From: Macrostomum lignano
Lineage: Eukaryota
Assembly (NCBI GenBank): GCA_002269645.1
Contig: NIVC01001546.1
Coordinates: forward strand, 1 to 64,000
Direction: 5' to 3'
Length of the DNA stretch: 64,000 nucleotides
Below the pieces are notes generated by a model, which searched no databases, was not told the origin of the DNA, and saw only the letters and a list, made by a program, of their open reading frames with translations. Numbering within the stretch: position 1 is the stretch's first letter; every line of letters starts with the position of its first letter. The translations under genes were made by a program, and so were the position numbers. Below are positions 17,391 through 52,605 of the stretch, piece after piece.

Positions 17391-20300
17391 TTACTTCTCA
17401 ACTCCGTTCACTGTCACGACTATGTTTCGAGAACCTGCGATGGGGCAAATTGGGGTTGATAACGCGAGTGTTGCGAGCAGTATGACACCAAAAAGTAACA
17501 GTCAGACTGAAGCTGAAAGTTTCATTAACAATCAATCCCAAAACTCAAAGATCCCCAATCCCAAAACTGAAAGATCCCTAATCACAAAACTAAAAGATCC
17601 CTAATCCCAAAACTCAAAGATCCCCAATCCCAAAACTCAAAGATCCCCAATCCCAAAACTCAAAGATCCCCAATCCCAAAACTCAAAGATCCCTAATCCC
17701 AAAACTAAAAGATCCCTAATCCCAAAACTCAAAGATCCCCAATCCCAAAACTGAAAGATCCCCAAATCCCAAAACTCAACGATCATGATTCCAAAACAGA
17801 AAGATCCCAATGCTAACTTATTGATACCAATCCTAAAACTCAAAGATCTCCGATTCCAAAAATCAAAGATACCAAAGATCCCAGTGAAAAGCAGATTAGC
17901 GAGGCCAGACACAAAGCAGACTCACTTTTATGATTCCTGTGCTCGCACAACCAAATACCCTGCCAGGTGCCCAGGCACATCTGGCCATTGCTGATGGGTA
18001 TGGTGAGGCTGCAGCCAAGGATGGCAGCTTTGGCGTGCGCGGGCATGTCGTCGGGGCCTTCGCACGAGTGCTGATAGCGCTGGTCCTGGAGCGAATGAGT
18101 GCATGGGTTGATGACAGGGTCTCTAGATTGATAACAGGGTCTCTAGATTGATAACAGGGTCTCTAGATTGATAACACAGGATCTCTGGATTGATAACACA
18201 GGATCTCTGGATTGATAACACAGGATCTCTAGATTGATAACACAGGATATCTAGATTGATAACACAGGATCTCTAGATTGATAATAGGGCCTCTAGATTG
18301 ATAACACAGGATCTCTAGATTGATAATAGGGCCTCTAGATTGATAACACAGGATCTCTAGATTGATAATAGGGCCTCTAGATTGATAACAGGGTCTCTAG
18401 ATTGATAACAGGGTCTCTAGATTGATAACAGGGTCTCTAGATTGATAACAGGGTCTCTAGATTGATAACAGGGTCTCTAGATTGATAATAGGGCCTCTAG
18501 ATTGATAACACAGGATCTCTAGATTGCTAACAGGGTCTCCAAATTGATAACACAGGATCTCTAGATTGATAACACAGGATCTCTAGATTGATAACGGAAT
18601 CGCTAGATTGCTAACAGGGTCTCCAAATTGATAACACAGGATCTCTAGATTGATAACACAGGGTCTCCAAATTGATAACACAGGATCTCTAGATTGATAA
18701 CACAGGGTCTCCAAATTGATAACACAGGATCTCCAAATTGATAACACAGGGTCTCCAAATTGATAACACAGGATCTCTAGATTGATAACACAGGGTCTCC
18801 AAATTGATAACACAGGATCTCTAGATTGATAACAGGGTCTCTAGATTGATAACACAGGATCTCTAGATTGATAACACAGGATCTCCAAATTGATAACACA
18901 GGATCTCCAAATTGATAACACAGGATCTCCAAATTGATAACACAGGATCTCCAAATTGATAACACAGGATCTCCAAATTGATAACACAGGATCTCCAAAT
19001 TGATAACACAGAATCTCTAGATTGATAACACAGGATCTCTGGATTGATAACACAGGGTCTCCAAATTGATAACACAGGGTCTCTAGATTGATAACACAGG
19101 GTCTCCAAATTGATAACACAGGGTCTCTAGATTGATAACACAGGGTCTCCAAATTGATAACACAGGATCTCTAGATTGATAACACAGGATCTCTAGATTG
19201 ATAACACAGGATCTCTAGATTGATAACACAGGGTCTCCAAATTGATAACACAGGATCTCTAGATTGATAACACAGGGTCTCCAAATTGATAACACAGGAT
19301 CTCTAGATTGATAACACAGGATCTCCAAATTGATAACACAGGGTCTCTAGATTGATAACACAGGGTCTCCAAATTGATAACACAGGATCTCTAGATTGAT
19401 AACACAGGATCTCTAGATTGATAACACAGGATCTCTAGATTGATAACACAGGGTCTCCAGATTGATAACACAGGATCTCTAGATTGATAACACAGGATCT
19501 CTAGATTGATAACACAGGGTCTCCAAATTGATAACACAGGATCTCTAGATTGATAACAGGGTCTCTAGATTAATAACACAGGATCTCTAGATTGATAACA
19601 CAGGATCTCTAGATTGATAACACAGGATCTCTAGATTGATAACACAGGATCTCCAAATTGATAACACAGGATCTCCAAATTGATGACACAGGATCTCTAG
19701 ATTGATAACACAGGATCTCTAGATTGATAACACAGGATCTCTAGATTGATAACACAGGATCTCTAGATTGATAACACTATAACACAGGATCTCCAAATTG
19801 ATAACACAGGATCTCCAAATTGATAACACAGGATCTCTAGATTGATAACACAGGATCTCTAGATTGATAACACAGGATCTCTAGATTGATAACACAGGAT
19901 CTCTAGATTGATAACACAGGATCTCTAGATTGATAACACAGGATATCTAGATTGATAACACAGGATCTCTAGATTGATAACGGAATCGCTAGATTGCTAA
20001 CAGGGTCTCCAAATTGATAACACAGGATCTCTAGATTGATAACACAGGATCTCTAGATTGATAACACAGGATCTCTAGATTGATAACACAGGATCTCTAG
20101 ATTGATAACACAGGATCTCTAGATTGATAACACAGGATCTCTAGATTGATAACACAGGATATCTAGATTGATAACACAGGATCTCTAGATTGATAACGGA
20201 ATCGCTAGATTGCTAACAGGGTCTCCAAATTGATAACACAGGATCTCTAGATTGATAACACAGGATCTCTAGATTGATAACACAGGATCTCTAGATTGAT

Positions 20301-21109
20301 AACACAGGATCTCTAGATTGATAACACAGGATCTCTAGATTGATAACACAGGATCTCTAGATTGATAACACAGGATCTCTAGATTGATAACACAGGATCT
20401 CTAGATTGATAACACAGGATCTCTAGATTGATAACACAGGATCTCTAGATTGATAACAGGGTCTCCAGAAAGGATTTGAAACAACTAGTTCAGTTGTAAA
20501 GAAGGAAGAGTAGAAAGCTTTTTACTTACCTCTGGTACAAGACGATTCAATATCATTTCCATATCAGCTCTAAAAGTTAGAAAATATAAACAAATCAGGC
20601 ACTATCCAACACCACAAACCAAAAGTACACAATATACTCACTTAACGGATGCATCCCAGGACTAAAATTGGAATGATGAGAAATGTACTTTAATAAACAT
20701 TGACGTGTTATAGATTTTCAGTTTTCAGGAACCTTAGGCCACCAAAAGTGCATTTGGCCCCTATCTTTAAGCGTAAAAAATATTGATTGACTTACCTCGT
20801 TCAAGCACAAACTTGCAGAGGTATGCTGAACTGAAAGTACAGCGTGACAGTTGATAAGGACAGGTCATGAAATGCTTGAAATACTTTAGTATATTGAAAT
20901 AGTTTCAATATTATGAGAACGATCAACTCACGCAACAAGTTGACGGTTCCAATTTTGATTTTAGCAATCTCTGGTACAGACTTGATTAGATCCGTGATGT
21001 AGTGACAGCCTCGAGATTTGCCTGACACCTTCAGCACCGTCTGGTACCAGACTGTAGCACCGCTGACTGCGGCGGAGGCTTTCGATGAGTTTGACAGAAA
21101 TAGTGCCGT
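17391..21109 (-). CDS. yjbQ: UPF0047/YjbQ family protein; 6 exons; no genomic ATG
   Basis: Exons (21109 or 21040)-20932, 20830-20796, 20661-20642, 20569-20530, 18085-17926 and 17434-17391, all GT-AG with consistent phases. Protein: WYQTVLKVSGKSRGCHYIT...LQHTSASLCLNESWDASVKADMEMILNRLVPE...EGPDDMPAHAKAAILGCSLTIPISNGQMCLGTWQGIWLCEHR...SRNIVVTVNG. Confidence 0.9.
17535..17775. repeat. 23-bp minisatellite in the last YjbQ intron (GATCCCCAATCCCAAAACTCAAA)
   Basis: Tandem unit read directly. Confidence 0.9.
18112..20462. repeat. 20-22-bp minisatellite (GATTGATAACACAGGATCTCTA)n, ~100 copies, filling a YjbQ intron
   Basis: Tandem unit with GGTCTCCAAA variants, between exons 18085 and 20530. Confidence 0.95.
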
Positions 21110-52000: not shown

Positions 52001-52605
52001 CAATAGTGAGAATAGCTATAGTGCCTTAGACTGCTCAGGCTAGAAATGCAGTACATATACATATATCACCAATAGATAAATACACACTACCAATAAAATA
52101 GTTATAAACAAAGTACATTCATACACTACCAATAAAAGTTAAGTAACAACAGCAAGATCATCTCAGAGGGAAGAAGAAGCCCTGCAACATTTTAATGGCA
52201 TCAGTGTGATGTGATCATTAGGTCTGAAGACAAAAGTTTGGCCCTTTGACAATTATTTAAAACAGATTGGTAAGTATTTATTATATAACATAAAATATTA
52301 TATGCCTAACAAAAAATGCTCATGCCTAGGTTCTCAAGTTCTTACTCTTAGGCCCTCAAGCATATTCCATATAATGCTAGCAAGCACTAAAAAAATAAAG
52401 CAATAAAGCAATAACAACTTACTGTTGTTTCATATTTAATTGCTAAAGACACAAGAGTGTCACTGGGTTTAACTTTGTGGAGTCTTGTCCTCTGAGATGT
52501 TGTTGAAGCACTTTTTAATGTTGCACCATATGTCCGAATTTTCTTAACTGTATTTTTTGGGACAGTTGATCCAGAAGTAAACAATATATCTTTTTCATCA
52601 GCCAT
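40073..52605 (-). CDS. LYSMD1/2: LysM and putative peptidoglycan-binding domain-containing protein (LYSMD1/2-like); 3 coding exons; 11.2-kb first intron
   Basis: Exons 52605-52423, 41257-40845 and 40337-40073. The LysM domain is split across intron 1: RTYG...HKVKPSDTLVSLAIKYETT|VEELKRLNGLWSNDGLQLKSSIKVP. FLRKFDLKF segment; C-terminal EETFYKL. The exon 3 acceptor was chosen by frame and is less certain. Confidence 0.85.
40362..40760. repeat. 28-bp minisatellite in LYSMD intron 2, same family as the HBS1L intron 1 array
   Basis: GAGGATCTGGGAGGCTGGCCCAGCAACT tandem. Confidence 0.92.
42409..43225. mobile_element. Tc1/mariner-type MITE with ~280-bp TIRs
   Basis: TA|TGAGGGATGTCCCAGAAGTAGTGTCAC ... 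GTGACACTACTTCTGGGACATCCCTTG|TA; long imperfect inverted arms; TA duplication. Confidence 0.8.
43245..47724 (+). mobile_element. PIF/Harbinger-ISL2EU-like DNA transposon, 4.48 kb, with TIRs and a TA flank
   Basis: TA|AAGGGGATGTCAACTTAAGCACCAGAATGG ... CCATTCTGGTGCTTAAGTTGACATCCCCTT|TA. The left end 43245-43440 is inverted relative to 47220-47724, where the terminal module is triplicated. Confidence 0.88.
43676..46609 (+). pseudogene. DDE_Tnp_4-type transposase + SWIM-like finger + USP/UCH (peptidase C19) domain in one frame, broken by two TGA codons
   Basis: N-terminal Zn-finger remnant; HTH LKKLRQGCSFQSLAFDFNIS; DDE residues VGDHTY, IFDKGY, LVECSF; TGA at 45437; SWIM-like KAGSRTAGCDSHV; TGA at 45644; USP boxes GLPNNGLQCNTNAAVQ, HHGNRLKLGHFTA, WTRIDDMKV. 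ORFs 43667 and 45662 are in the same frame (difference 1995 nt). Confidence 0.8.
48206..48985 (+). mobile_element. Probable non-autonomous Helitron
   Basis: A|TCTCTACATATAAAAATC...(GTCT/GTGT)n 5' end typical of such elements; GGCTA-CGTT-TAGCC hairpin then TTAG|T, an imperfect CTAG. Confidence 0.45.
49440..50720. repeat. Cryptic GA-rich low-complexity expansion (~1.3 kb)
   Basis: Purine-rich + strand with a (GA)n core; explains the Leu/Ser ORFs on the minus strand. Confidence 0.9.

Follow-up and report, generated by a model that had tools for sequence, protein, structure and literature searches.

Five co-oriented housekeeping genes among minisatellites in flatworm-like DNA: a tentative candidate, at least in part, for a trans-spliced operon

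The gene cluster and its minisatellites

Gene models were rebuilt by hand on the minus strand between positions 17391 and 52605 of a 64,000-nt stretch of DNA, the whole of which is referred to here as the window, and in which an original prediction had placed five co-oriented housekeeping genes that would be resolved from one operon by spliced-leader trans-splicing. The description of the genes themselves proved correct, in that all five models are in frame, contain introns and lie head-to-tail on the minus strand in the order LYSMD, QDPR, PAK1IP1, HBS1L and YjbQ/UPF0047. The 13 internal introns are without exception GT-AG, 10 of them with a donor of the form GTRAG. No opposite-strand gene lies between the five, the sole plus-strand open reading frames (ORFs) being those of a transposon in LYSMD intron 1, and a scan of the intergenic gaps with Pfam revealed no recognisable ORFs and no hidden genes. 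The coding regions are as follows:

40073-52605, minus strand: LYSMD1/2-like gene, three coding exons (52605-52423, 41257-40845, 40337-40073)
35809-37342, minus strand: QDPR (dihydropteridine reductase), two coding exons (37342-36869, 36060-35809)
29270-33260, minus strand: PAK1IP1/Mak11-like WD40 gene, exons 33260-32764, 30816-30361 and 29543-29270
23139-28385, minus strand: HBS1L, four coding exons (28385-27741, 27091-26595, 25986-25551, 23429-23139)
17391-21109, minus strand: YjbQ/UPF0047, six coding exons (21109-20932, 20830-20796, 20661-20642, 20569-20530, 18085-17926, 17434-17391)

The LYSMD product, whose C-terminal residues are ...ETFYKL, carries a LysM domain (39.8 bits) that bridges the junction of exons 1 and 2, and this match validates the 11,165-nt intron 1, which contains the DNA transposon. 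Exon 1 of the same gene (52423-52605) has ~34% GC and is nearly free of CpG, the other coding exons of the cluster having 50-69% GC and a CpG observed/expected ratio of ~1. A homologue search with QDPR returned 1634 matches, with a top identity to animal QDPR of 55-59%. The HBS1L model scores 443 bits against human HBS1L as opposed to ~300 bits against eRF3 or eEF1A, and its N-terminal motif aligns too; a homologue search with the N-terminal exon gave weak, uninformative matches only, the best of them in an unrelated compact eukaryote. The YjbQ model matches Pfam UPF0047 at 136.6 bits and YjbQ structures in the PDB. PAK1IP1 is the least secure of the five identifications: residue 5 of the model aligns with residue 3 of what we take to be human PAK1IP1, and the two are colinear from the N-terminus at 33% identity (E 1e-34). 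A homologue search, full-library HMMER and a PDB search with this model were dominated by generic WD40 proteins, and yielded no orthologues or taxon signal. The functional grouping of ribosome biogenesis with ribosome rescue that had been read into the cluster concerns just two of the five genes, and is counted against a single five-gene polycistron.

The window is animal genomic DNA in which the exons are rich in GC, the unique non-coding sequence is rich in AT and minisatellites are very numerous, tandem repeats accounting for 24% of the window and for 49% of positions 17391-41257. Each of the 10 introns of at least 491 nt contains an array, which begins 43-213 nt past the donor; the array nearest the acceptor stops 24-327 nt short of it in the long introns, the exception being the 11-kb LYSMD intron 1 with its transposon. 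YjbQ also has three short introns, of 72-134 nt, and these are free of arrays. Upstream of the four downstream genes the following arrays were found:

37437-37862, minus strand: 35-bp minisatellite, ending 83 nt before the AG that precedes QDPR
33351-34433, minus strand: 31-bp minisatellite, ending 90 nt before the AG that precedes PAK1IP1, with ATG GAA TAG on the sense strand in each unit
28472-28728, minus strand: 21-bp minisatellite in the gap between PAK1IP1 and HBS1L, ending 64 nt before the HBS1L AG
21221-21952, minus strand: 20-bp minisatellite, ending 111 nt before the AG that precedes YjbQ

These distances uphold, more strongly than had been stated, the claim that a minisatellite ends ~75-110 bp before an AG in the four downstream genes in the manner of the ordinary introns. 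LYSMD, the first gene, is preceded by ~1.1 kb of array-free unique sequence and then by dispersed repeats. Since every unit of the array upstream of PAK1IP1 contains ATG-GAA-TAG, this array has to leave the mRNA. It is proposed that the sequence upstream of each downstream first coding exon, laid out like the introns as a unique buffer plus a minisatellite, would be an outron or an intron that is spliced away.

The arrays within introns have units of 20-74 bp, are 0.3-2.3 kb long and belong mostly to distinct families, and the unique buffers beside the splice sites look protected. Indeed, the regular placement of differing minisatellites in the core of long introns and upstream regions is the cluster's more unusual feature. 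One 28-bp family is common to HBS1L intron 1 (27144-27628) and LYSMD intron 2 (40362-40758), with 89% identity between the arrays; relative to transcription, it runs the same way in each of the two introns, indicating a dispersed array family as opposed to a local expansion. A 20-mer from this family gave one chance match among metagenome contigs and none among viral contigs.

Missing start codons and candidate splice sites

The first recognisable exons of PAK1IP1 and YjbQ are without an in-frame ATG. No ATG in any frame lies between the array and the exon of PAK1IP1, the open frame of which reads LLSRDK/SAPVLVIG (the slash, here and below, marking a proposed splice junction), and an in-frame Met is first reached at residue 78 of the model, within the first WD repeats; SAPVLVIG aligns with MELVAG, which we take to be the N-terminus of the human protein. 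An in-frame TAA is present in YjbQ two codons upstream of 21109, and no ATG occurs from the array to the conserved VWYQTVLKV strand, the N-terminus of the family beginning near model residue 19-20 in the PDB structures. Both genes thereby lack an in-frame AUG of their own upstream of the conserved N-terminus, as do open frames with a leader-donated start (slORFs), and the absence of ATG from the first exon means that the start codon and 5' end of each must come by splicing, barring an unlikely non-AUG start.

It is very improbable that the missing ATGs instead reflect non-AUG initiation, assembly error or decaying genes. A CTG at 33250-33248 in PAK1IP1, flanked by G at positions -3 and +4, could feasibly serve as such a start, and it aligns at residue 3 of the sequence that we take to be human PAK1IP1. 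However, non-AUG starts are rare, the same feature is seen in two independent genes, and the reading frames are intact over three (PAK1IP1) and six (YjbQ) exons with conserved domains.

An AG resembling a splice acceptor had been proposed ahead of each first coding exon, and all five are present:

52608-52609, minus strand: AG before LYSMD, gcttag/AA, 2 nt upstream of the ATG
37354-37355, minus strand: AG before QDPR, tgcaag/CC, 11 nt upstream of the ATG; pyrimidine fraction 0.70, which perhaps stands out
33261-33262, minus strand: phase-0 AG before PAK1IP1, gacaag/TCC; weak acceptor, pyrimidine fraction 0.50
28408-28409, minus strand: AG before HBS1L, ccattccctgcttccag/CC, 23 nt upstream of the ATG; the best acceptor-like of the five
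21110-21111, minus strand: phase-0 AG before YjbQ, agcaag/ACG; weak acceptor, pyrimidine fraction 0.40

For reference, background AGs have a pyrimidine fraction of 0.49 +/- 0.15 and internal acceptors average 0.65; such simple measures were preferred to position-weight matrices derived from the 13 introns, which were overfitted and whose leave-one-out scores collapse. A strong acceptor is found only at HBS1L (TTCCAG, pyrimidine fraction 0.80, position-weight score 7.6, in the top 1% of AGs), and perhaps at QDPR, the PAK1IP1 and YjbQ sites falling short of this description. The HBS1L AG fits the trans-acceptor motif YTNCAG of Macrostomum lignano (motif from PMC8629364).

Of the possible mechanisms, spliced-leader trans-splicing would be the likeliest, for PAK1IP1 and HBS1L at least. 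If a leader with a terminal ATG were joined at 33261, the result would read MSAPVLVIGTLEGG... (MSAPVLVIG... for PAK1IP1), and if it were joined at 21110 the result would read MTALFLS...VWYQ in YjbQ; these are the only nearby AGs that yield full-length proteins with a leader-borne AUG. The AUG of a leader, expected to be close to ...AATTTATTGCATG, may then supply the start codon of PAK1IP1 at 33261, and perhaps that of YjbQ likewise at 21110. Trans-splicing is the simplest source of PAK1IP1's missing start codon.

Flatworm spliced leaders end in AUG (PMC8629364, PMC9851317), and the leader AUG is in frame in 28% of trans-spliced Schistosoma mRNAs (PMC9851317); more than 40 S. mansoni cDNAs depend on it, according to the account of Cheng et al. 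(2006) given in PMC9851317. As far as that account extends, PAK1IP1 and YjbQ resemble such cases in having no AUG and a phase-0 AG that restores the full-length protein, and differ from them in that donation of the AUG is inferred here, the AGs make weak acceptors and the AUG could come from cis exons instead.

Several observations weigh against trans-splicing at these sites. A phase-0 AG is expected by chance in most stretches of this kind, and in pyrimidine content the AGs ahead of PAK1IP1 and YjbQ do not exceed the background. A leader AUG would be out of phase at their better-looking neighbours, 33251 (CCCCAG) and 21067 (CCGCAG), and use of either would need a cis exon. Moreover, a palindrome adjoins the PAK1IP1 site, and could be a promoter element, or chance:

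33264-33273, unstranded: 10-bp palindrome GTCACGTGAC, of E-box/CLEAR type, ending 2 nt upstream of the PAK1IP1 AG

The sequence TCACGTGA occurs six times in the window against an expectation of 0.58, four of the six being within a duplicated segment described below. A further CACGTG at 53218, ~610 nt upstream of the LYSMD ATG, is likewise a promoter element or chance.

The possibility was also weighed that these are ordinary monocistronic genes with their own promoters, the array lying within a cis-spliced 5' intron behind a short non-coding or ATG-bearing first exon, with no trans-splicing at these genes; this is somewhat unlikely, and is helped by the palindrome at PAK1IP1 and by candidate donors upstream of YjbQ and of QDPR, where the intron would lie in the 5' untranslated region:

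22022-22048, minus strand: end of a candidate YjbQ cis 5' exon, ATG (22048) plus six codons, then GTGAGT (22027)
37976-37984, minus strand: candidate donor of a QDPR 5' untranslated intron, cag/GTAATA (~37982), ~120 nt before the array

The YjbQ donor at 22027 precedes the array by 75 nt and matches the AG at 21110 in phase; the resulting intron would be 918 nt long and of the standard layout, a coincidence of a kind that we estimate at roughly 5% per gap. A second candidate donor for QDPR, GTGAGT, is located at 37882, and 16 sense-strand GTRAG motifs lie inside the array upstream of that gene. Monocistronic, cis-spliced genes would also accord with the 70-90% of Macrostomum genes that are without trans-splicing (PMC8629364, PMC10468722), and with gaps of 2-2.7 kb, an ordinary intergenic size comparable to the ~2.2 kb that separates trans-spliced monocistronic genes in tunicates (PMC7986045).

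Conversely, no sense-strand GTRAG occurs anywhere in the 2548-nt gap between QDPR and PAK1IP1 or the 884-nt gap between PAK1IP1 and HBS1L, despite its use at 10 of 13 internal donors, although this absence is not significant, with only 0.8 and 0.4 expected in the unique parts of the two gaps. Cis-splicing of PAK1IP1 would require an ATG-bearing exon with a non-consensus donor, and at HBS1L the promoter, exon and donor would all have to be accommodated in ~100 nt between an AATAAA (28856) and the array (28728). The original prediction that the acceptors have no convincing partner donor therefore holds, with little weight, for these two gaps, and fails for QDPR and YjbQ, where candidate GTRAG donors are present.

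Intergenic spacing and comparison with flatworm operons

The affinity of the window was assessed from QDPR. Neighbour-joining made M. lignano the sister of the window sequence in 228 of 300 bootstraps (76%), and another 32 paired the window sequence with Macrostomum and the fluke Trichobilharzia together, so that ~87% placed it with flatworms in total. Two loops carry an additional residue in both the window and the flatworm proteins, which also share the motifs WVC[ST]VD, ANRRAMG and LVL; the other animals compared lack these features. The M. lignano QDPR locus also resembles the window in its GC-rich exons and in the 32-40 bp minisatellites in and around genes. A tetranucleotide run is found at both loci, namely (ACAG)n x231 beside the compared M. 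lignano QDPR (14295-15198 of that sequence) and (AGAC)n x143 in the window (35155-35719), where it begins 90 nt past the QDPR stop; this is a shared genome habit, not positional homology. The two QDPR genes differ in intron position and in their neighbours, and their products are 49-59% identical. The share of tandem repeats is ~15% in the genome of M. lignano and 16.5% in that of the rhabdocoel Luticola (PMC5730564, PMC13238120). Judged by these characters, the DNA most likely derives from a tandem-repeat-rich free-living flatworm near Macrostomum. An acoel affinity was considered and is not favoured: S. roscoffensis does trans-splice (PMC9911081), but its leader is without a terminal AUG, its genome is LTR-dominated (LTR, long terminal repeat) with 36.7% GC, and the QDPR characters are flatworm-like. 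The proposal of trans-splicing, which would have no basis in a lineage without the process, is in this respect compatible with the apparent host, since affinity near Macrostomum points to a lineage that has it (PMC8629364, PMC10468722).

Trans-spliced operons are, as had been asserted, established in flatworms, nematodes and tunicates (PMC8629364, PMC7986045). In M. lignano a single 35-nt leader, CGGTCTCTTACTGCGAAGACTCAATTTATTGCATG, is found on ~30% of genes, and ~15% of genes reside in operons of up to nine genes each; the operon spacers are repeat-rich, and the distance between neighbours is bimodal, with a peak near 100 bp, only when repeats are subtracted, a cut-off of 1 kb being applied (PMC8629364). 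Multi-gene precursors constitute ~7% of the assembled transcripts of this species (PMC5730564), and conservation of the leader extends to M. cliftonense and M. hystrix, which also keep the ATG at its end (PMC10468722). No gene for a spliced-leader RNA was found in the window by Rfam, which reported no RNA family at all, and the 3' end of the M. lignano leader followed by its donor is absent too.

Spacing within the cluster was examined as the stop-to-start gap, the tandem repeat within it, the distance from coding stop to acceptor minus arrays, and an adjusted distance from poly(A) signal to acceptor minus arrays, for which the first canonical hexamer was assumed and 3' ends are thus putative:

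LYSMD to QDPR: gap 2730 nt; repeats 619 nt; stop to acceptor minus arrays 2111 nt; adjusted ~1400 nt or more
QDPR to PAK1IP1: gap 2548 nt; repeats 1648 nt; stop to acceptor minus arrays 900 nt; adjusted ~556 nt
PAK1IP1 to HBS1L: gap 884 nt; repeats 454 nt; stop to acceptor minus arrays 430 nt; adjusted ~170 nt
HBS1L to YjbQ: gap 2029 nt; repeats 732 nt; stop to acceptor minus arrays 1297 nt; adjusted ~388 nt
28851-28856, minus strand: AATAAA, the sole canonical hexamer in the PAK1IP1 to HBS1L gap and the presumed poly(A) signal of PAK1IP1

The gaps and array lengths confirm the earlier figures of ~2.7, 2.5, 0.9 and 2.0 kb, partly filled by repeats. The AATAAA between PAK1IP1 and HBS1L lies ~427 nt from the HBS1L AG with the array included, and the ~100 nt of unique DNA that precede the array leave scant room for an independent HBS1L promoter, first exon and donor. 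PAK1IP1 to HBS1L would accordingly appear, from its layout, to be the best operon candidate, and is the sole gap that fits operon spacing well. The spacing from QDPR to PAK1IP1 and from HBS1L to YjbQ is also repeat-inflated in the manner of M. lignano operons, although this is said less surely.

Trans-splicing of genes that are each transcribed from their own promoter, the gaps being outrons and no polycistronic RNA being formed, is unlikely, but would account for several features. Approximately 60% of trans-spliced M. lignano genes lie outside operons (PMC8629364), and there is room for promoters in unique segments of ~720 nt (34434-35154), ~1.2 kb (21953-23138) and, between LYSMD and QDPR, more than 1.4 kb; TATA-like motifs are present in these segments, and the E-box palindrome at PAK1IP1 could be cited here also. 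The CpG observed/expected profile of the gaps revealed no promoter-like islands, and is uninformative since the exons themselves are CpG-rich. The very little unique sequence in the PAK1IP1 to HBS1L gap stands against separate promoters, as does the fact that three of the gaps, when adjusted for repeats, fall below the 1-kb operon criterion of M. lignano.

As the best of these explanations, it is tentatively proposed that some of the cluster, at the least, may be a trans-spliced operon, the genes of which would be co-transcribed and then resolved by 3'-end cleavage and trans-splicing. What the sequence establishes is the gene models, the missing ATGs, the array layout and the flatworm affinity; trans-splicing, use of a leader AUG and polycistronic transcription are inferences from it. 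The cluster resembles the operons of M. lignano (Ustyantsev & Berezikov 2021, PMC8629364; Wudarski et al. 2017, PMC5730564) in its co-oriented conserved genes and probable related lineage, in gaps that are inflated by tandem repeats and would come to a few hundred nt or less once these are subtracted, in its GT[G/A]AG donors and in the HBS1L acceptor. It differs in that LYSMD to QDPR is above the 1-kb repeat-adjusted threshold, in that three of the five proposed AGs are CAAG as opposed to CAG, and in being known from DNA alone. The operons of parasitic flatworms (PMC12582326) belong to the same phylum, and are mostly short groups of conserved genes served by one leader type; all gaps in the window are, before repeat adjustment, larger than the 300-bp cut-off applied there, although some fused gene models in those species imply spacers of several kb. 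Nematode and tunicate operons (PMC7986045) share the co-oriented housekeeping genes, and the median spacers of P. pacificus reach ~0.8-1 kb; they belong to other phyla, nematodes use a specialised SL2, and the spacers of C. elegans (~100 bp), Ciona (1 bp) and Oikopleura (~31 bp) are far shorter than those in the window, with Trichuris and Pristionchus at 0.5-1 kb.

Other observations weigh against an operon, particularly a long one. Five genes would be co-oriented by chance with a probability of (1/2)^4 = 1/16 = 0.06, a value that is not significant and is also in keeping with cis-spliced monocistronic genes, and since the cluster is flanked by mobile elements orientation can be judged for these five host genes only. 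The adjusted distance from LYSMD to QDPR exceeds the 1-kb M. lignano criterion. In addition, no homologue of LYSMD, PAK1IP1, HBS1L or YjbQ lies within 10 kb of the compared M. lignano QDPR, and the linkage is therefore not conserved there. Of the original prediction of one polycistronic unit, what survives is that PAK1IP1 and HBS1L resemble an operon pair of the Macrostomum type; nothing specific was found for a five-gene unit. A repeat-bloated polycistron of 20-35 kb that takes in the whole cluster, or else QDPR to YjbQ, with kb-scale minisatellite arrays as its intercistronic spacers and a leader as the sole source of a start codon for PAK1IP1 and YjbQ, is judged quite improbable. Least likely of the versions is one unit of five genes that begins with LYSMD, and an operonic link is unlikely for LYSMD to QDPR.

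If one long unit were nonetheless to exist, operon transcription and trans-splicing would tolerate intron-like, array-filled spacers far beyond the lengths seen in nematodes and tunicates. Confirmation of the proposed operon would furnish a further example of the repeat-expanded operons known in Macrostomum, and a clean case of two leader-dependent start codons. The phenomenon has already been described in flatworms whichever explanation applies, and the cluster raises no new question on operon biology. A practical consequence concerns annotation, in that PAK1IP1 and YjbQ of this genome will be cut short or overlooked by gene finders that depend on an ATG, and array-filled outrons will break transcript assemblies.

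Mobile elements and other repeats in the window

Several further elements were recorded, within and on either side of the cluster:

1049-6745, minus strand: intact Helitron-type ORF of 1898 aa, with Helitron_like_N, PIF1 helicase and DUF6570 domains
9351-12038: perfect direct repeat with a spacing of 2388 bp, at least 300 nt at 100% identity
43243-47726, plus strand: DNA transposon in LYSMD intron 1, with inverted repeats of ~117-181 nt that are 92-96% complementary
53860-54040: palindromic insert resembling a miniature inverted-repeat transposable element, within a dispersed repeat (53748-54227)
54228-58837, plus strand: gypsy-type LTR retrotransposon ~1.6 kb upstream of LYSMD, its 1153-aa gag-pol ORF free of interruptions

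The N-terminus of the Helitron ORF contains a GDGNCFF motif reminiscent of OTU proteases, with no OTU match in Pfam. The segment with the 2388-bp spacing carries duplicated ORFs at 9396/11784 and 11074/13462 as well as four of the six TCACGTGA sites, and has arisen either by tandem duplication in the recent past or as an artefact of assembly. The two LTR segments of the gypsy element (54228-54448 and 58617-58837) are 99.5% identical, which indicates a young insertion; an exact database look-up of its pol ORF returned no record. The transposon in the LYSMD intron encodes ORFs of 590 aa, with a weak match to HTH_Tnp_4, and 315 aa, with a weak match to the ubiquitin hydrolase family UCH, an unusual pairing. 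The dispersed repeat around the palindromic insert has a second, inverted copy at 61099-61357, ~7 kb away.

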